From Macrostomum lignano (lineage: Eukaryota), in contig NIVC01002012.1 in assembly GCA_002269645.1 (NCBI GenBank), positions 1 to 64,000 on the forward strand: a stretch of DNA of 64,000 nt, read 5' to 3'. The notes under the pieces are model-generated. The model saw nothing but the letters and a program-made list of their open reading frames with translations. It had not been told where the DNA came from and did not search any database. Both the position numbers and the translations under genes were made by a program. Every line of letters starts with the position of its first letter. The first letter of the stretch is position 1. This document shows positions 3-7,150 of the stretch, piece after piece.

Positions 3-1728
3 GCACAATCGATTGCTGATAAAACCGTCAAAGACAGGTGCCTCAGCGAGGCCGCTCGCTTGTGCACAGCAGTTGACCAGTGGAATTCAATTACTCCGTT
101 GGTCAGTACGATTACCGATCAGCGACTCAAAGACGACTGTTGCGCTTGCATAGCGACGACTGACAATGAGCTTAAACACGCGGAGGAAGTCTTAAAACTC
201 GTGCAAATTATCGACAATTCAAAGCGGAAGGATTCGTGCTGTATTGAACTGAGTCGAACCGCGGCCAGCCTTGAGGACTGGGAGACGCATAAAAGTCTAC
301 TGAACTTAGTCTCGGATGCTAGCGTGCAGGATCGGTGCTGCGAAGAGGCTGCCATATGCGCCGCATCCATGGCCAATTGGGGGCAAGCCGTCCGATTGTG
401 TGGCGAAACTCAACGCTCCTCGGAATTGCGCAACAGCTGCCTGAGAGAGTTAGCTAAACTTGCCTTGGGCAGGCGTCGATACGACGTTGCCGAGGAAGTC
501 GCAGGCAAAATTTCTGATTGCGCAACTAAAAACTATTGCTATAGTGATACTGCCACTATGTCCGCTACCTGGGAAGACTGGGAAGATGCCGATAATTTAG
601 CAAAGCAAATTACTGACGGTTGTTTGAGAGACCAGTGTTATTCGAATATTGCACTAACTTGTTGTGCTGCTAAAAAATGGATCGAGGCTAATCGTTTCGG
701 GCAGAAAATTCGTGACCAGGACGTTAAGATCGCTGCTTCAAGGAATTGGCAGTCGGCGCCGCAAATGCTCAGCTGTGGGCAGAGGCAGATAAATTCGTAC
801 TCGAACTTTGCAAGTATGAAGTCCAGCTTACTTGCATTACTGAGGTGGCTAAGCTAGCTTCAACAGCTCAAGAGTGGGCTGTTGCACTGAGTGTTCTGCA
901 ACTGATATCGGAGCAGGACAATCGAGAACGAGGCTTCTATGATGTTTCTGTAAGCGCTGTTCATGCCGAAAATACTGAAGCTGCTGTTAATGCCTTATCG
1001 ATGATTCGTAATATAGAATTTCGCGATTTGTGCACTGTCGAGCTGGTGAAGCTTTCAGCCGTCACCGGCTTGGCAAATGTTGCCGAGATGGTGAAGTTGA
1101 CCTCTAGCAGAGACATTGCCGAGCTGTGCCGTTCTGATGCTATAAAAGCTGCAGCTTTAAGTGGCAGTTTCAACCTGTTGATGCAGCAACTACCACCGAA
1201 AGCCAGCGTGTTGAGCGTCTTTGATTTCGATAGCCGCGCTGGTAAACTCCAACCGTCTGAATGGCAGTTGCGAGGTCTCTCCAACTGCGCCATTGCTGCC
1301 GAGAGTGAGCAAACGATTACAAGACTACTGGACGACATGAAGCAGCTACACAGAATCCAACTGTTTGAAGAGTGCATCTCATTCGGCTACTCAGCCCTGG
1401 CCGTTTTGATTGTACCCCATCTCAACCAGGTGGATCAGAGAGACGAAAAAGGCAGTACCGCACTGATGCTAGCTACTGATGAGGATCGTCACGAGATTGT
1501 AAAAAGCCTGCTAGAAAGCGGAGCATCAGTGCAGGCCGCAGACAATCTGGGTCGAACTGCTTTGGCTCGAGCGTTTCTGTCTGGCAACATGAAGATCGCC
1601 AAGACTTTGATTGATAGTGGCTCCAACGTCCATCGCCGAGACCGCCAGGGCTTAACGTGTGCGCAGATGGCTGAAATGGCTGGACAACGAGAAGTGTTAC
1701 GCTTGTTAGACTATCGCAATTTAGAGAG
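3..1728 (+). CDS. Exon 1 (open at window edge) of the putative cGLR-ankyrin-caspase gene: about 11 copies of a 33-aa TPR-like helical repeat followed by about 3 ankyrin repeats; 1-nt frameshift at about 726-727
   Basis: The frame is open from nt 3 (AQSIADKTVKDRCLSEAA...). ORFs 60..857 and 746..1732 join if one A is added at gttaagatcgc (721-731), giving VKDRCFKELA, which matches the repeat consensus. Ankyrin motifs GSTALMLA, GRTALARA and GLTCAQMA are present. Donor AG|GTGACA at 1729. Confidence 0.8.
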
Positions 1729-1797
1729 GTGACATTCTAATTCATTTTTATAACTTATTATTAATTCCAATTTAAAAAGCGATCATTTGCATTTTAG

Positions 1798-2348
1798 CTC
1801 GAGTTTGACGGAAGCGTTTGTTGAAACTGCCACGGAAGATGAGTAAGAAACGAGCTTATACCTGAGCTGTCTTAAACTCGAAATTTTGTTGGAGGCGACT
1901 CTTTACGGGGATCTCTCCACGACACTTGCCTTTGAAAAAATTTTCTCAATAAAAAAACCCTTCAGAAGTTCGACGCCAGAAGAACTGAGCCTTGACCTGC
2001 ACCAGCGGCTTAACCAGGCTGGATTCACCAAGTCAGCCGCGATCAAGCAGCAAGCGCTTGCCTCTAATCTGGAAGCGGCAGCACAGGAGCAGTCGCTTGA
2101 GCACAGGCTACTCATTGGCAGCTGCATCGAGGGCTGGGGCTACGGAAATTTGGCACTGAAAACACCAACTGATGCAGCGGCTAAGCGTGACCGTTTAGGC
2201 ACAAATGACATTAACTGGACTGTTTTAGTCGGAGGTAAGAAGAAAATATTTCACTTGGCTGACGACTGCCAGTGCGAGTTTGCTGACGATGAAGAGCAGC
2301 AGCTGGAAGCGGTGAAGAACGGTCGCATTCATTTGCAATCGCGCATAG
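1798..2348 (+). CDS. Exon 2: N-lobe of a Mab-21/cGAS-like nucleotidyltransferase (GS motif, D-I-N); in-frame TAA at 1844-1846
   Basis: Acceptor ttttAG at 1796-1797, phase 2, matching the exon 1 donor. LIGSCIEGWG at 2111-2140 and NDINWTVLV at 2204-2230 resemble the hGS...DhD nucleotidyltransferase motif. Donor G|GTTAGT at 2349. Confidence 0.75.
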
Positions 2349-2892
2349 GTTAGTACGAGCTAGCTACATGTATTGGGCAAATTTTCGTAGAACACATCCT
2401 GGTATTAACCATTATACTAGCTGAGCTAAATACTTTGGCGGGGAGCGGGGACTGCCTTCCAAATTGTATTGGACCTAGAGGACCCTATTACGAGCTATCA
2501 AAAATGAACACTCGCAGGAAGTTAGTGGCCACCCTAGCGCAACGCATGGTCCCACAATCATCGGTAAGGCAATACTGCCCGCATTACGCCAGCGCGCGCA
2601 TGGACAATGTACACAGGCACGCACTCATGCCTGCAAGCATTCACACAGAATTCTATCACAAAATTACTAAATAGGAATTCCGCTCCTGTGGGGTTAAAGA
2701 TAGCACCATTGGCACCATATGGACAGTGCAAAACTCATCATTGCTTGCGGAAATCGGGTCAAAAAAATAATGGAGAAATATTTATTAAACTGGTTGCTGT
2801 TCTCATACGTGTCATAAATAAAGCAAAGCAACACAAAGGCATTGCTGCCCATTCCACCGACTCCCCTGAGCAGGCACACAAGCGCGCGGATA

Positions 2893-3034
2893 CGTACGCA
2901 GTCATGCGCATAGCAGTGTACAGCGGCCCTGACTTTCTAATTATCAGGAACTTGTACATTTCATAGTGCCGAATTAATTGGGGATTAGCCCTTATGTGCG
3001 TTAATTTCACAAGCAGACTCAAGCCGAGATTCCA
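2893..3034 (-). mobile_element. 5'-truncated copy of the SINE-like repeat also found at 48129..48361, lying in intron 2 of the caspase-fusion gene
   Basis: Collinear matches to 48129-48268, e.g. gtgtacagcggccctgacttt vs gtgtacagccgccctaacttt, and gcgttaatttcacaagcagactcaagccgagattcca vs gccgttaattgcacgagcagagccaagccgagattcca. Confidence 0.65.
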
Positions 3035-3080
3035 GTTTCTATGTTTTTCCATCATATTACCACCCACCATTAATTTTCAG

Positions 3081-5424: not shown

Positions 5425-5507
5425 GTAAATATAAGTTGATAAAGGTAGAGTTATTTGTTAGGCTAGTTTAGTAGTTATTATTCCTATATATTTACCTCAA
5501 CTTGCAG

Positions 5508-5830
5508 GATCTGGTCCGCAGCACCGCACTGACGCATGCGTGCCGGTGTGGTCGAGTGAATATTGTGGACTTACTGCTTCAAAATGGCGCCAGTGCAGCT
5601 CCTGGCATAGGAAGCGACAATGCAGAAACTTCTAGTTTCGGTTCACTCTCTGGCATAGCAACGCCACTAATTTGGGCAGCCAGACGAGGTCACAAGAGTG
5701 TGATAGTAAAGCTCACACCATTTCTAAAACACCTTGAAGACTGGCAGGCTGTGGACGAGTACGAGCGTACTGCACTGCAATCTGCCGAGTTTTTTGGTCA
5801 TCAAGAGTGCGCTGATTATATTAGAACGTG
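5508..5830 (+). CDS. Exon 5: ankyrin repeats
   Basis: Acceptor cttgcAG at 5506-5507 (phase 0). STALTHACRCGRVNIVDLLLQNGA, ATPLIWAARRGH, RTALQSAEFFGHQECADYI. Donor TG|GTAAGT at 5831. Confidence 0.85.
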
Positions 5831-6000
5831 GTAAGTTTCTCACGCATAACGACATATCAGAAGACTTTCACTGTCTGGTTATCGACAAACTGTATTCCGC
5901 TGGGTGCTTTCCAACTGGCTTCCAGTCTCAACCTATCAACCTTAACCTGATTGTTGATGGTTTGACTTTCACTCTCTGGTTGTTGATAGTTTGTCGTCCA

Positions 6001-6100
6001 CTCTCTCTCTCTCTCTCTCTCTCTCTCTCTCTCTCTCTCTCTCTCTCTCTCTCTCTCTCTCTCTCTCTCTCTCTCTCTCTCTCTCTCTCTCTCTCTCTCT
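6001..6100. repeat. (CT)n microsatellite, about 50 units, intronic
   Basis: Direct reading. Confidence 0.98.
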
Positions 6101-6282
6101 GATTGTTGATGGTTTGTCTTTAACTCTCAGATTTTTTATAGTTTGTCTTATTTTGTCTTCTTATTTGTATACAGTGTTCGTAAGTATACAAATAATAATA
6201 CTACATGTATATACAAACATTTACATACTACCTGACGAAAATCAAACCCTTTGAAATAAACTTCTGTTGATTTTTTCCCAAG

Positions 6283-7150
6283 CATCCGGAAGTTTGCCGC
6301 GGACGCATCGATCTCCGAACCTTCGTCGCAGCCACCAGAAGGCGGTGGTGATGAGAACGGAAGCGGCGCAACTGGCAACAATTCCGAGCAGAACGCCGGC
6401 GGTGAAAGTGGCAGTTCATCCGGCTCAGGCGAGGGCAACCAGGGCGATCCTCCACCTCCGATTGAACCGCCCCGATATGAAATAAGAACAGACAATCACC
6501 GGCGCTTAGCAATTGTCATTAACAATGTTAGATTTGGGTATGACTCAGACGCATCCACGAGAGACGGAGCACAACTCGACGACACGAAGGTGGTTGATAT
6601 GCTTCTTAAACTTGGCTTTCACAGTCCTCAGACAATGAAAAATGCCAGAAGGTTGTCTATGCGGTCTATCGGCTTTGAAGACAGAGAGCTTCAAGAGTGC
6701 GATGTGTTTCTATTGCTTGTCATGTCTCACGGTTATCTAGGCCACATTGAATCGTCCGATGGTTTTTATCTTAACCTTGAGATCGACCTCTTTAGAAGAT
6801 TTCGACAACTGGAAGGTCTCAAAAACAAACCTAAGCTGTTTTTAGTACAGTCGTGCAGGCAAGTTTCAGCCACACAGCAGCCGGAGGTTGCTGTTGAAAT
6901 CGTAAGTCCGGAGGACTGCCTGTACTTTTACAGCACAGCCGAGGGTGGCTTGTCCGAACGGCACTCGCAACTTGGTAGCCCGTTTGTCCAGTCCGTGCTC
7001 AAAGTCTGTCTCGCCGACCGATCGCGCAGAGCAGGGCTTCTAGACTTAACGGCGAGAGTGATTGACGAAGTCCAAAAACTAACAAATGGCCGCCAAATAC
7101 CGTGCTTGATTTCTACGCTGAATAAAGAAGTGAATCTGCGTCGGAATTGA
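6283..7150 (+). CDS. Exon 6: Gly/Ser/Pro-rich linker plus caspase (peptidase C14A) p20/p10 domain
   Basis: Acceptor ttttttcccaAG at 6281-6282 (phase 2), then an open frame to TGA at 7148-7150. Motifs: YEIRTDNHRRLAIVINN, TRDGAQLD, LLKLGF, LLVMSHG (His codon 6728-6730), KPKLFLVQSCR (Cys codon 6854-6856), DCLYFYST, SERHSQLGSPFVQ, QIPCLISTLNK. Confidence 0.9.

Follow-up and report, generated by a model that had tools for sequence, protein, structure and literature searches.

A Macrostomum lignano gene joining ankyrin repeats and a predicted catalytically inactive Mab-21/cGAS-fold domain to a caspase

Introduction

Animal cGAS-like receptors (cGLRs) signal in trans through nucleotides, and caspases are recruited through death-fold adaptors, which raises the question of how to read a locus where both kinds of protein seem to be written into one gene. 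The locus lies at positions 3 to 7150 of a 64,000-nt stretch of DNA from the flatworm Macrostomum lignano (NCBI GenBank assembly GCA_002269645.1, contig NIVC01002012.1, positions 1 to 64,000, forward strand; the whole of this stretch is hereafter the window). A sequence-only reading of the window had proposed that a cGAS-like (Mab-21) receptor, ankyrin (Ank) arrays and a caspase are fused there, and that ligand-induced dimerization could activate the caspase while bypassing STING. The proposal that one gene joins the Mab-21/cGAS fold, ankyrin arrays and a caspase is borne out by the annotation of a second, intact copy, by the exon structure of a paralog and by intron phases, and the sequence of the Mab-21 domain points to a member of the cGLR family that has lost its active site.

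Results

The plus strand between 3 and 7150 carries eight long stop-to-stop open reading frame (ORF) pieces in alternating frames, where six had been counted before. Pfam matches fall on the following pieces:

728-1729, plus strand: ankyrin repeats
3074-3754, plus strand: Mab-21_C, 28.3 bits (cut-off 24.1)
4960-5436 and 5475-5831, plus strand: ankyrin repeats
6260-7147, plus strand: Peptidase_C14, E 1.1e-28

The pieces at 3-854, 1847-2350 and 3718-4377 have no Pfam match, and of the families that had been expected Ank and Peptidase_C14 were found, together with Mab-21_C, whereas Mab-21 itself (PF03281) matched none of the window pieces. A homolog search with an Ank plus caspase composite query was flooded by ankyrin proteins, and a word-indexed search with the caspase domain only gave a single distant match; an exhaustive HMMER search with the caspase piece recovered paralogs and a 2,111-aa protein (P0026) that is 97% identical to this piece and has its caspase at the C-terminus. 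P0026 carries every ORF piece of the window in the order proposed, and its locus (L006, hereafter the reference copy) lies on M. lignano contig NIVC01000031.1 of the same assembly (GCA_002269645.1). Set against it, the window holds the 3' four-fifths of a seven-exon gene (1,687 of 2,111 codons), the first 424 aa of the protein being encoded upstream of the window:

3-1728, plus strand: exon 1 (5' part upstream of the window), about 12 of about 24 33-aa repeats, then the first Ank block (~1380-1700; Pfam Ank_2, 9.8e-18); P0026 aa 425-999
1729-1797, plus strand: intron 1, 69 nt, GTGACA...TTTTAG, phase 2; GT-AG, matches the P0026 model
1798-1842, plus strand: micro-exon 2, 45 nt, SSSLTEAFVETATED-; P0026 aa 1000-1015
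1843-1965, plus strand: intron 2, 123 nt, GTAAGA...CTTCAG, phase 2, holding the TAA at 1844-1846; P0026 model
1966-2348, plus strand: exon 3, N-terminal half of the Mab-21/nucleotidyltransferase (NTase) core, from alignment motifs and strands of an AlphaFold2 (AF2) model
2349-3080, plus strand: intron 3, 732 nt, GTTAGT...TTTCAG, phase 1, position exactly kept in paralog P0182; GT-AG, P0026 model
3081-4376, plus strand: exon 4, rest of the Mab-21 domain and a family-specific helical extension of ~210 aa, from Pfam, PDB profile search, hhalign and Foldseek
4377-5003, plus strand: intron 4, 627 nt, GTGAGT...TCGCAG, phase 2, junction of the Mab-21 body with the Ank-caspase cassette; same position and phase in P0182 and P0027
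5004-5424, plus strand: exon 5 (cassette exon a), begins YPNDWSEE, ankyrin repeats (Pfam Ank_2, 5e-24)
5425-5507, plus strand: intron 5, 83 nt, GTAAAT...TTGCAG, phase 0; GT-AG, P0026 model
5508-5830, plus strand: exon 6 (cassette exon b), ankyrin repeats (Pfam Ank_2, 5.4e-12)
5831-6282, plus strand: intron 6, 452 nt, GTAAGT...CCCAAG, phase 2, with a (CT)50 microsatellite at 6001-6100; GT-AG, P0026 model
6283-7150, plus strand: exon 7, Gly/Ser/Asn/Pro-rich linker (~6341-6460), caspase p20/p10 (~6500-7140; Pfam PF00656), TGA 7148-7150

All six GT-AG introns coincide exactly with the transcriptome-derived model of P0026, and five of them are those named by the sequence-only reading. The sixth, intron 2, had escaped it; this intron removes the TAA at 1844, which is the second to fourth base of the GTAAGA donor and on which the linkage of the Mab-21 domain to the caspase had been said not to depend. 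Nor do the pieces splice into one frame as they stand, since their literal concatenation has 58-90 stops in every frame and two 1-bp deletions break the coding sequence. Once the six introns are taken out and the two missing bases put back, the window yields a 1,687-codon ORF that ends at TGA 7148-7150 and differs from P0026 residues 425-2111 at 11 amino acids. The architecture in a single ORF is upheld by P0026, but the proposed length of at least 1,728 aa was too great because it took in 41 codons of the missed intron. The GenBank annotation of this assembly was built from genome-guided and de novo transcriptomes (StringTie/TACO) and not ab initio, with ORFs called by TransDecoder and with units split where trans-splicing and poly(A) addition had been mapped by experiment (PMC5730564), so that every junction has indirect transcript evidence through the P0026 model. 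The product runs from about 24 33-aa helical repeats through Ank, Mab-21/cGAS fold, helical extension, Ank and Gly/Ser linker to the caspase, an order that had been read correctly and that Pfam recovers as Ank, Mab-21_C, Ank and Peptidase_C14, the fold being recognized by PDB profile search and Foldseek.

A second M. lignano locus with the same architecture, of the kind that the sequence-only reading had suggested looking for, is that of the paralog P0182/PAA80948.1, which has a near-duplicate, P0030/PAA59752.1. P0182 is 38% identical to the window gene over the aligned region and shares its order (Ank, Mab-21, helical, Ank, linker, caspase) and its seven-exon structure, including an 18-aa micro-exon homologous to micro-exon 2. 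Three junctions of the two genes fall in identical alignment columns, and in both the fusion junction comes immediately before an xPxDWS[DE]E motif, a homologous site that reads YPNDWSEE in the window gene and RPQDWSDE in P0182. Over the last three exons the window gene, P0182 and the gene of the kinase-headed protein P0027/PAA89054.1 agree in where their introns fall and in their phases (2, 0, 2). Judged from these introns, Ank-Ank-linker-caspase is a three-exon cassette that follows a Mab-21 head in two genes and kinase/pseudocaspase heads in others. The shared positions and phases therefore speak for fusion by exon shuffling and not for read-through of the annotation, and the comparison of the genes indicates that the fusion is real and old. 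Related Mab-21 proteins without a caspase also exist in the family: within 10 kb downstream of the non-fused paralogs P0001-P0005 there is no caspase, so these are genuinely unfused. In a small neighbor-joining tree P0001-P0005 form one clade (97% bootstrap), below which the two fused genes branch paraphyletically, a topology that fits one ancient fusion followed by one loss.

The window gene itself differs from the reference copy in ways that bear on its status. The two loci are syntenic, with a downstream ERO1 gene common to both, and window 1-5977 is 99.8% identical to the reference copy (9 mismatches, exactly two gaps), against 93.9% for window 6068-7570. Within the first 5.8 kb the eight differences, six substitutions and two deletions, are all exonic (99.9% identity), and the ~1.6 kb of introns there contain none; this could reflect a short conversion tract or the use of RNA-sequencing (RNA-seq) reads to polish the reference assembly. 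The substitutions span 409-1635, with five of them bunched at 1546-1635 in the first Ank block. Microsatellites, (CT)50 and (TC)55, lie at 5977-6100 and 7304-7413 on either side of the caspase exon, and identity to the reference copy falls from 99.8% to ~94% at the first of them, so the two copies look mosaic (by recombination, gene conversion or haplotype switching in the assembly). Alignment to the reference copy places the two deletions as follows:

~723-725, plus strand: frameshift 1, AA against AAA in the reference copy (GTT AAA GAT to GTTAAGAT)
~3742-3744, plus strand: frameshift 2, CC against CCC in the reference copy (ATG CGC CCG TCA to ATGCGCCGTCA)

The ORF pieces 3-854 (frame 3) and 728-1729 (frame 2) overlap at the first, and the second directly follows a conserved FTLLPL motif. 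Left unrepaired, the spliced frame that enters the window meets a stop at nt 855, which cuts the product to ~708 aa.

By these differences the window copy would be either a pseudogenised duplicate or a carrier of assembly errors. It is close to an even prospect that the locus is a decaying duplicate (homeolog or allele) with real frameshifts, making a repeat protein of at most ~708 aa while only the P0026 locus is functional. Both deletions fall within conserved coding sequence that is whole in the intact copy; M. lignano is described as a neopolyploid (PMC10733133), and its assemblies have extensive duplicated blocks at 95% identity or more (PMC5730564, PMC10733133); and other long ORFs of the window are unbroken (e.g., an M1 peptidase of 796 aa), so indels are not widespread across the window. 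On the other side, both deletions shorten short homopolymers (AAA, CCC), which is typical of long-read assembly error, and the near-identity of the two copies over 5.8 kb gives no sign of relaxed constraint there. A rough count of 18 changes in the caspase exon gives ~9 nonsynonymous and ~9 synonymous ones, suggesting that constraint persisted, and the Mlig_3_7 assembly was additionally polished with RNA-seq (PMC5730564), which could have mended the exons of the reference copy only.

The caspase exon encodes a nearly complete Peptidase_C14 domain (PF00656, E 1.1e-28, 101 bits, profile positions 1-232 of 233), whose nearest solved structures are caspase-3 and caspase-7 (E 2e-14). Human caspase-3 residues R64, H121, Q161, C163 and R207 are all kept (Arg 6560-6562, His 6728-6730, Gln 6848-6850, Cys 6854-6856 and Arg 6959-6961, respectively). 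The catalytic His lies in VMSHG (LLSHG in caspase-3) and the catalytic Cys in VQSCRQ (IQACRG), with an active-site pentapeptide QSCRQ in which the trailing Gly has become Gln, and the S1 pocket has STRDG for TSRSG, the Q of QSC, and SERHS for SWRNS. The caspase is thus apparently intact, with a predicted Asp-specific pocket. Its intersubunit linker, ~9 residues shorter than the caspase-3 one, contains no IETD-like site, and Pfam found no CARD, DED, PYD or death domain in any of the pieces or in full-length P0026, where only Ank, Mab-21_C and Peptidase_C14 matched. Such features would be expected of a caspase activated by dimerization through a long prodomain and not by upstream cleavage.

Ahead of the first Ank block P0026 has about 24 tandem 33-residue units with the signature D..C...A....W..A, which the sequence-only reading had called TPR-like. 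They have no match to the tetratricopeptide repeat (TPR), a 34-aa helix-turn-helix solenoid, in Pfam; a single-sequence AF2 model of low confidence (predicted local distance difference test, pLDDT, 59) is helix-turn-helix throughout, and its best Foldseek matches are TPR proteins (LGN, MamA), although weakly (E at least 2.4e-3). On this model "TPR-like" seems justified as the name of a fold class and no more. The 33-aa repeat also fills about 2.7 kb immediately before the annotated start of the non-fused P0002 (L002 7129-9847), so the P0002 model probably lacks part of its N-terminus; the ancestral head of the family appears to have consisted of repeats, Ank and Mab-21. More copies of the Mab-21 family lie ~8 kb downstream and upstream of P0001 (L001 21818-23202 and 9-2904, minus), and the family is therefore locally clustered. 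The intact protein starts upstream of the window (L006 10001) with MGNQNSQ, which we take to fit the N-myristoylation consensus (Gly2, Ser6) and which hints at membrane anchoring.

The fold of the central domain was examined by profile and by structure. A PDB profile search was made with a trimmed alignment, because Ank columns had swamped the full one (A1); the resulting profile of six family members gave 41 matches at E<=10, 40 of them to cGAS, cGLR1 or MAB21L1. The best, to cGAS (E 2e-6), spans profile positions 174-275, and human cGAS matches reach 102-278 at E ~1e-3. The Mab-21_C helix bundle recognized by Pfam lies at ~3370-3570. Foldseek, run against the PDB with the AF2 model of the region, returned MAB21L1, cGAS, MB21D2 and MiD51 for all of the top 26 matches (E 2.7e-5 to 0.1, probability 0.92-1.0). 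A Mab-21/cGAS fold of the window domain is thus supported by profile and model.

The active site is a different matter. Li et al. (2023; PMC9980059) define the cGLR motif as h[QT]GS-X8-20-[DE]h[DE]h-X50-90-h[DE]h, together with homology over both lobes and structural homology. The window gene has a GS motif, LLIGS (2108-2122), a degenerate metal-binding motif, D-I-N (2207-2215; family consensus D-I-D), and a Thr codon (3128-3130) that hhalign to human cGAS (a sequence identical to PDB chain 5v8o_A) places opposite D319, a position with Asp as family consensus. It departs from the motif in LIGS, in a 28-residue spacer, in DINW and in Q-T-T at the D319 equivalent, and P0182 has VGS, DMNW and Ser at the same places. 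The non-fused P0001-P0005 retain MTGS...DIDW...D. In the consulted parts of the biochemical screen table of Li et al., entries 89-93 are M. lignano proteins of the window Mab-21 family that were curated as cGLRs and cloned, two of them close relatives of P0001/P0002, and they retain [DE]h[DE]h and the third Asp (PMC9980059); the accessions of the fused paralogs were not found in those parts, which is not conclusive. Two of the three catalytic carboxylates are replaced (DxD to DxN; D to T or S) in both caspase-fused members and only in those, and the domain is therefore read as a pseudo-enzyme. The description as a cGAS-like receptor accordingly holds for fold and family, and fails for the active site at every sub-motif. 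The segment of the cGAS zinc thumb is a gap in the family alignment, and an invariant family-wide set of His and Cys residues in the NTase core (H96, C101, C152 and H173 of alignment A2; window 2249-2281 and 3116-3160) may form a different metal site.

Rfam and spliced-leader (SL) scans of the window gave no matches. A 23-bp minisatellite of ~76 copies (85% matches) occupies 15042-16805, just upstream of the ERO1 coding exons, and 17-bp and 21-bp arrays lie between the ERO1 exons at 17620-17918 and 18974-19500. The neighbouring genes recognized by Pfam are:

16901-20346: ERO1 (two large exons)
31192-31797, minus strand: TPR protein
53758-54810, minus strand: KH_SLS1-like protein
55174-56097: bestrophin fragment
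58848-61238: M1 aminopeptidase (uninterrupted 796-aa ORF)
62524-63801: ankyrin-repeat protein at the end of the window

Discussion

The intact protein is, on balance, probably an initiator-type caspase with a sensor or scaffold prodomain, activated by induced proximity without a nucleotide messenger. A very long prodomain would stand in place of a CARD or DED; the repeat arrays, together with the catalytically dead Mab-21 module, would recognize a ligand or partner and oligomerize; and the caspase domains would be brought together and activated by induced proximity, with no cyclic nucleotide, STING or adaptor required. cGAS dimerizes on nucleic acid, and MiD51 and MAB21L1 are non-enzymatic scaffolds. 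The bypass of STING proposed earlier fits this scheme because the NTase catalytic residues have been lost. An immune role would be the most likely setting, since the family is lineage-specific, expanded and repeat-rich and has swappable heads.

Several points weigh against this reading. The window copy is frameshifted twice and its spliced frame is interrupted, and the window locus itself may make no fusion protein. The paraphyly of the fused genes in the neighbor-joining tree means that loss of the catalytic residues may be convergent, or that the tree is wrong. The AF2 model of the Mab-21 region is of moderate quality (mean pLDDT 66.8, predicted template modelling score 0.67, 7-sequence alignment), and over the 380-417 aligned columns of the top 26 Foldseek matches the target-normalized template modelling score is only ~0.45-0.53. 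The N-terminal NTase core alone (first ~100 residues) gave no significant hhalign alignment to cGAS, and the register of the GS and DxN motifs was set by motif position and predicted strands and not by a significant profile alignment. Long-prodomain caspases can, moreover, serve development or tissue turnover.

The last point leads to a possible, though rather unlikely, account in which a genuine fusion protein serves outside immunity as a regulator, a caspase for cell turnover, germline or regeneration whose prodomain is a docking scaffold like MAB21L1/2. The inactive Mab-21 proteins MAB21L1/2 and MiD49/51 have non-immune roles (PMC9980059), the top Foldseek match is MAB21L1, and M. lignano is described as having intense stem-cell-driven turnover. 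Against this, a lineage-restricted multi-copy family with long, internally similar repeats and with kinase and Mab-21 heads on one caspase cassette has the pattern of an innate-immune family, and its nearest relatives are curated cGLRs and not MAB21L1 orthologs. A bolder form of the favoured induced-proximity scheme, which we hold to be improbable but worth stating, would be an "all-in-one inflammasome": the former cGLR domain and the repeats would bind pathogen nucleic acid or another pathogen-associated molecular pattern, and oligomerization would activate the attached caspase with no messenger, STING or death-fold adaptor. If true, prokaryotic sensor-protease defence proteins would have a eukaryotic counterpart, whose effector cassette has been placed by flatworms behind sensor heads of different kinds (Mab-21, kinase).

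It is very improbable that the locus makes two products, with TGA 4378-4380 closing an Ank-Mab21 protein and the Ank-caspase made separately, the 2,111-aa model being a polycistronic or read-through artefact. M. lignano is rich in operons and trans-spliced genes (PMC5730564), the non-fused Ank-Mab21 paralogs terminate at about the same point, and a stand-alone Ank-caspase model (P0029) is known. The donor of the fusion intron also overlaps a stop codon (GA|GTGA, window 4377-4380), so that read-through meets TGA 4378-4380 at once and a caspase-less Ank-Mab21 isoform, produced by intron retention and ending roughly where the non-fused paralogs end, is conceivable. Exon 5, however, lacks an ATG close to its 5' end, and the frame is open for just 44 nt upstream of the acceptor; the M. 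lignano SL ends in ATG, but joined to 5004 it reads frame 3, which is out of frame because frame 3 stops at 5154. The junction is frame-preserving, with position and phase kept in a paralog of 38% identity, and a pipeline that splits units at SL and poly(A) sites made no split here (PMC5730564). Least credible is an active cGLR that makes a nucleotide second messenger and carries a caspase besides: although the domain belongs with the cGLRs by fold and family, GS and the first acidic residue (D, 2207-2209) are kept, and close paralogs with a complete active-site motif are among the cGLRs listed in the consulted parts of the tables of Li et al. (PMC9980059), the four departures from the motif (IGS, 28-residue spacer, D-I-N, Q-T-T) and the parallel replacements in the other caspase-fused paralog (DMN, S) predict that no such messenger is synthesized.

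The favoured reading of an initiator-type caspase with a pseudo-enzyme prodomain can be set beside several known systems. Animal cGLRs (cGAS, Drosophila cGLR1 and the M. lignano entries 89-93) share with the fused gene the Mab-21/NTase fold, the C-terminal helix bundle and the sequence family; the fused gene differs in lacking two of the three catalytic acids, in a spacer outside the range and in a zinc thumb that is absent from the alignment, and where cGLRs signal via a nucleotide to STING it carries a caspase effector in cis. MiD51 and MAB21L1 use the NTase fold without catalysis, as a binding or oligomerization module. MAB21L1/2 and MiD49/MiD51 have the same fold as the domain of the fused gene, MAB21L1 being the best Foldseek match and MiD51 ranking 18-26, but they have neither protease nor repeat arrays, and MAB21L1 is not an ortholog, since the profile ranks cGAS far above it (E 2e-6 vs 0.38). 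cGLRs fused to Ank, TPR or death domains are on record, with N-terminal ANK/TPR as a minority architecture, and a caspase fusion has no mention in the main text of Li et al. (2023) or in the consulted parts of its tables (PMC9980059).

Initiator caspases (caspase-9/Apaf-1, caspase-8 with the death-inducing signalling complex, caspase-1 with inflammasomes) have the same C14A domain (clan CD), His/Cys dyad, Arg-Gln-Arg S1 pocket and long prodomain, and their activation by induced proximity would be expected of the fused gene too by analogy with caspase biology. They are recruited by adaptors, whereas the fused gene has its putative sensor or scaffold in the same polypeptide and no CARD, DED, PYD or death domain by Pfam. 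Prokaryotic and fungal sensor-to-protease modules include CBASS and type III CRISPR systems with SAVED-CHAT or caspase-like proteases, TPR-CHAT/Craspase, Avs, and fungal NLR-like proteins with protease heads. The logic of the prokaryotic modules is alike in that a repeat or NTase sensing part is coupled to a clan-CD protease that serves as death or alarm effector, but this is an analogy only, the proteases being alike at clan level. They depend on a diffusible nucleotide or a STAND NTPase switch, whereas in the fused gene the NTase is predicted to be dead and Pfam finds no NTPase domain, and its cassette is an animal C14A caspase spread by exon shuffling. Within M. lignano itself, P0027/PAA89054.1, P0028 and P0066 share the three-exon Ank-Ank-linker-caspase cassette (caspase identity 34%) behind a head that consists not of repeats, Ank and Mab-21 but of a protein kinase and a caspase-like domain with altered catalytic residues. 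P0027 (L008), P0028 and P0066 carry two caspase-type domains, the first with GCG for SHG and QTHRD for QACRG (by eye); this first domain may be a built-in pseudo-caspase partner.

Among the best 150 caspase relatives in 1.84 billion representative proteins, Mab-21 and caspase are combined in M. lignano proteins only. Full-text literature searches for Mab21 plus caspase architectures and for flatworm caspases with Ank prodomains found no paper on the architecture, in agreement with the earlier statement that no characterised animal protein joining a cGLR fold to a caspase was known; the family sequences are already deposited publicly under the names "hypothetical protein" or "Caspase family p20 domain-containing protein". 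The novelty is lineage-restricted and lies in a caspase with a new prodomain and in a cGLR-family pseudo-enzyme with an effector in cis.

Were the protein a developmental scaffold, or the window copy a pseudogene, the interest of the locus would be mainly evolutionary, as a case of domain shuffling and of pseudo-enzymes. M. lignano is a flatworm model capable of transgenesis and RNA interference (PMC5730564), and platyhelminths are reported to have mostly lost cGLR signalling (PMC9980059), so the idea of an immune caspase with a pseudo-enzyme sensor is directly testable. That a member of a curated cGLR family has lost its catalytic residues and acquired a caspase in cis suggests that innate sensing may be wired to cell death in a different way, and the portable three-exon Ank-caspase cassette, with its fixed intron phases, shows how such wiring can arise.

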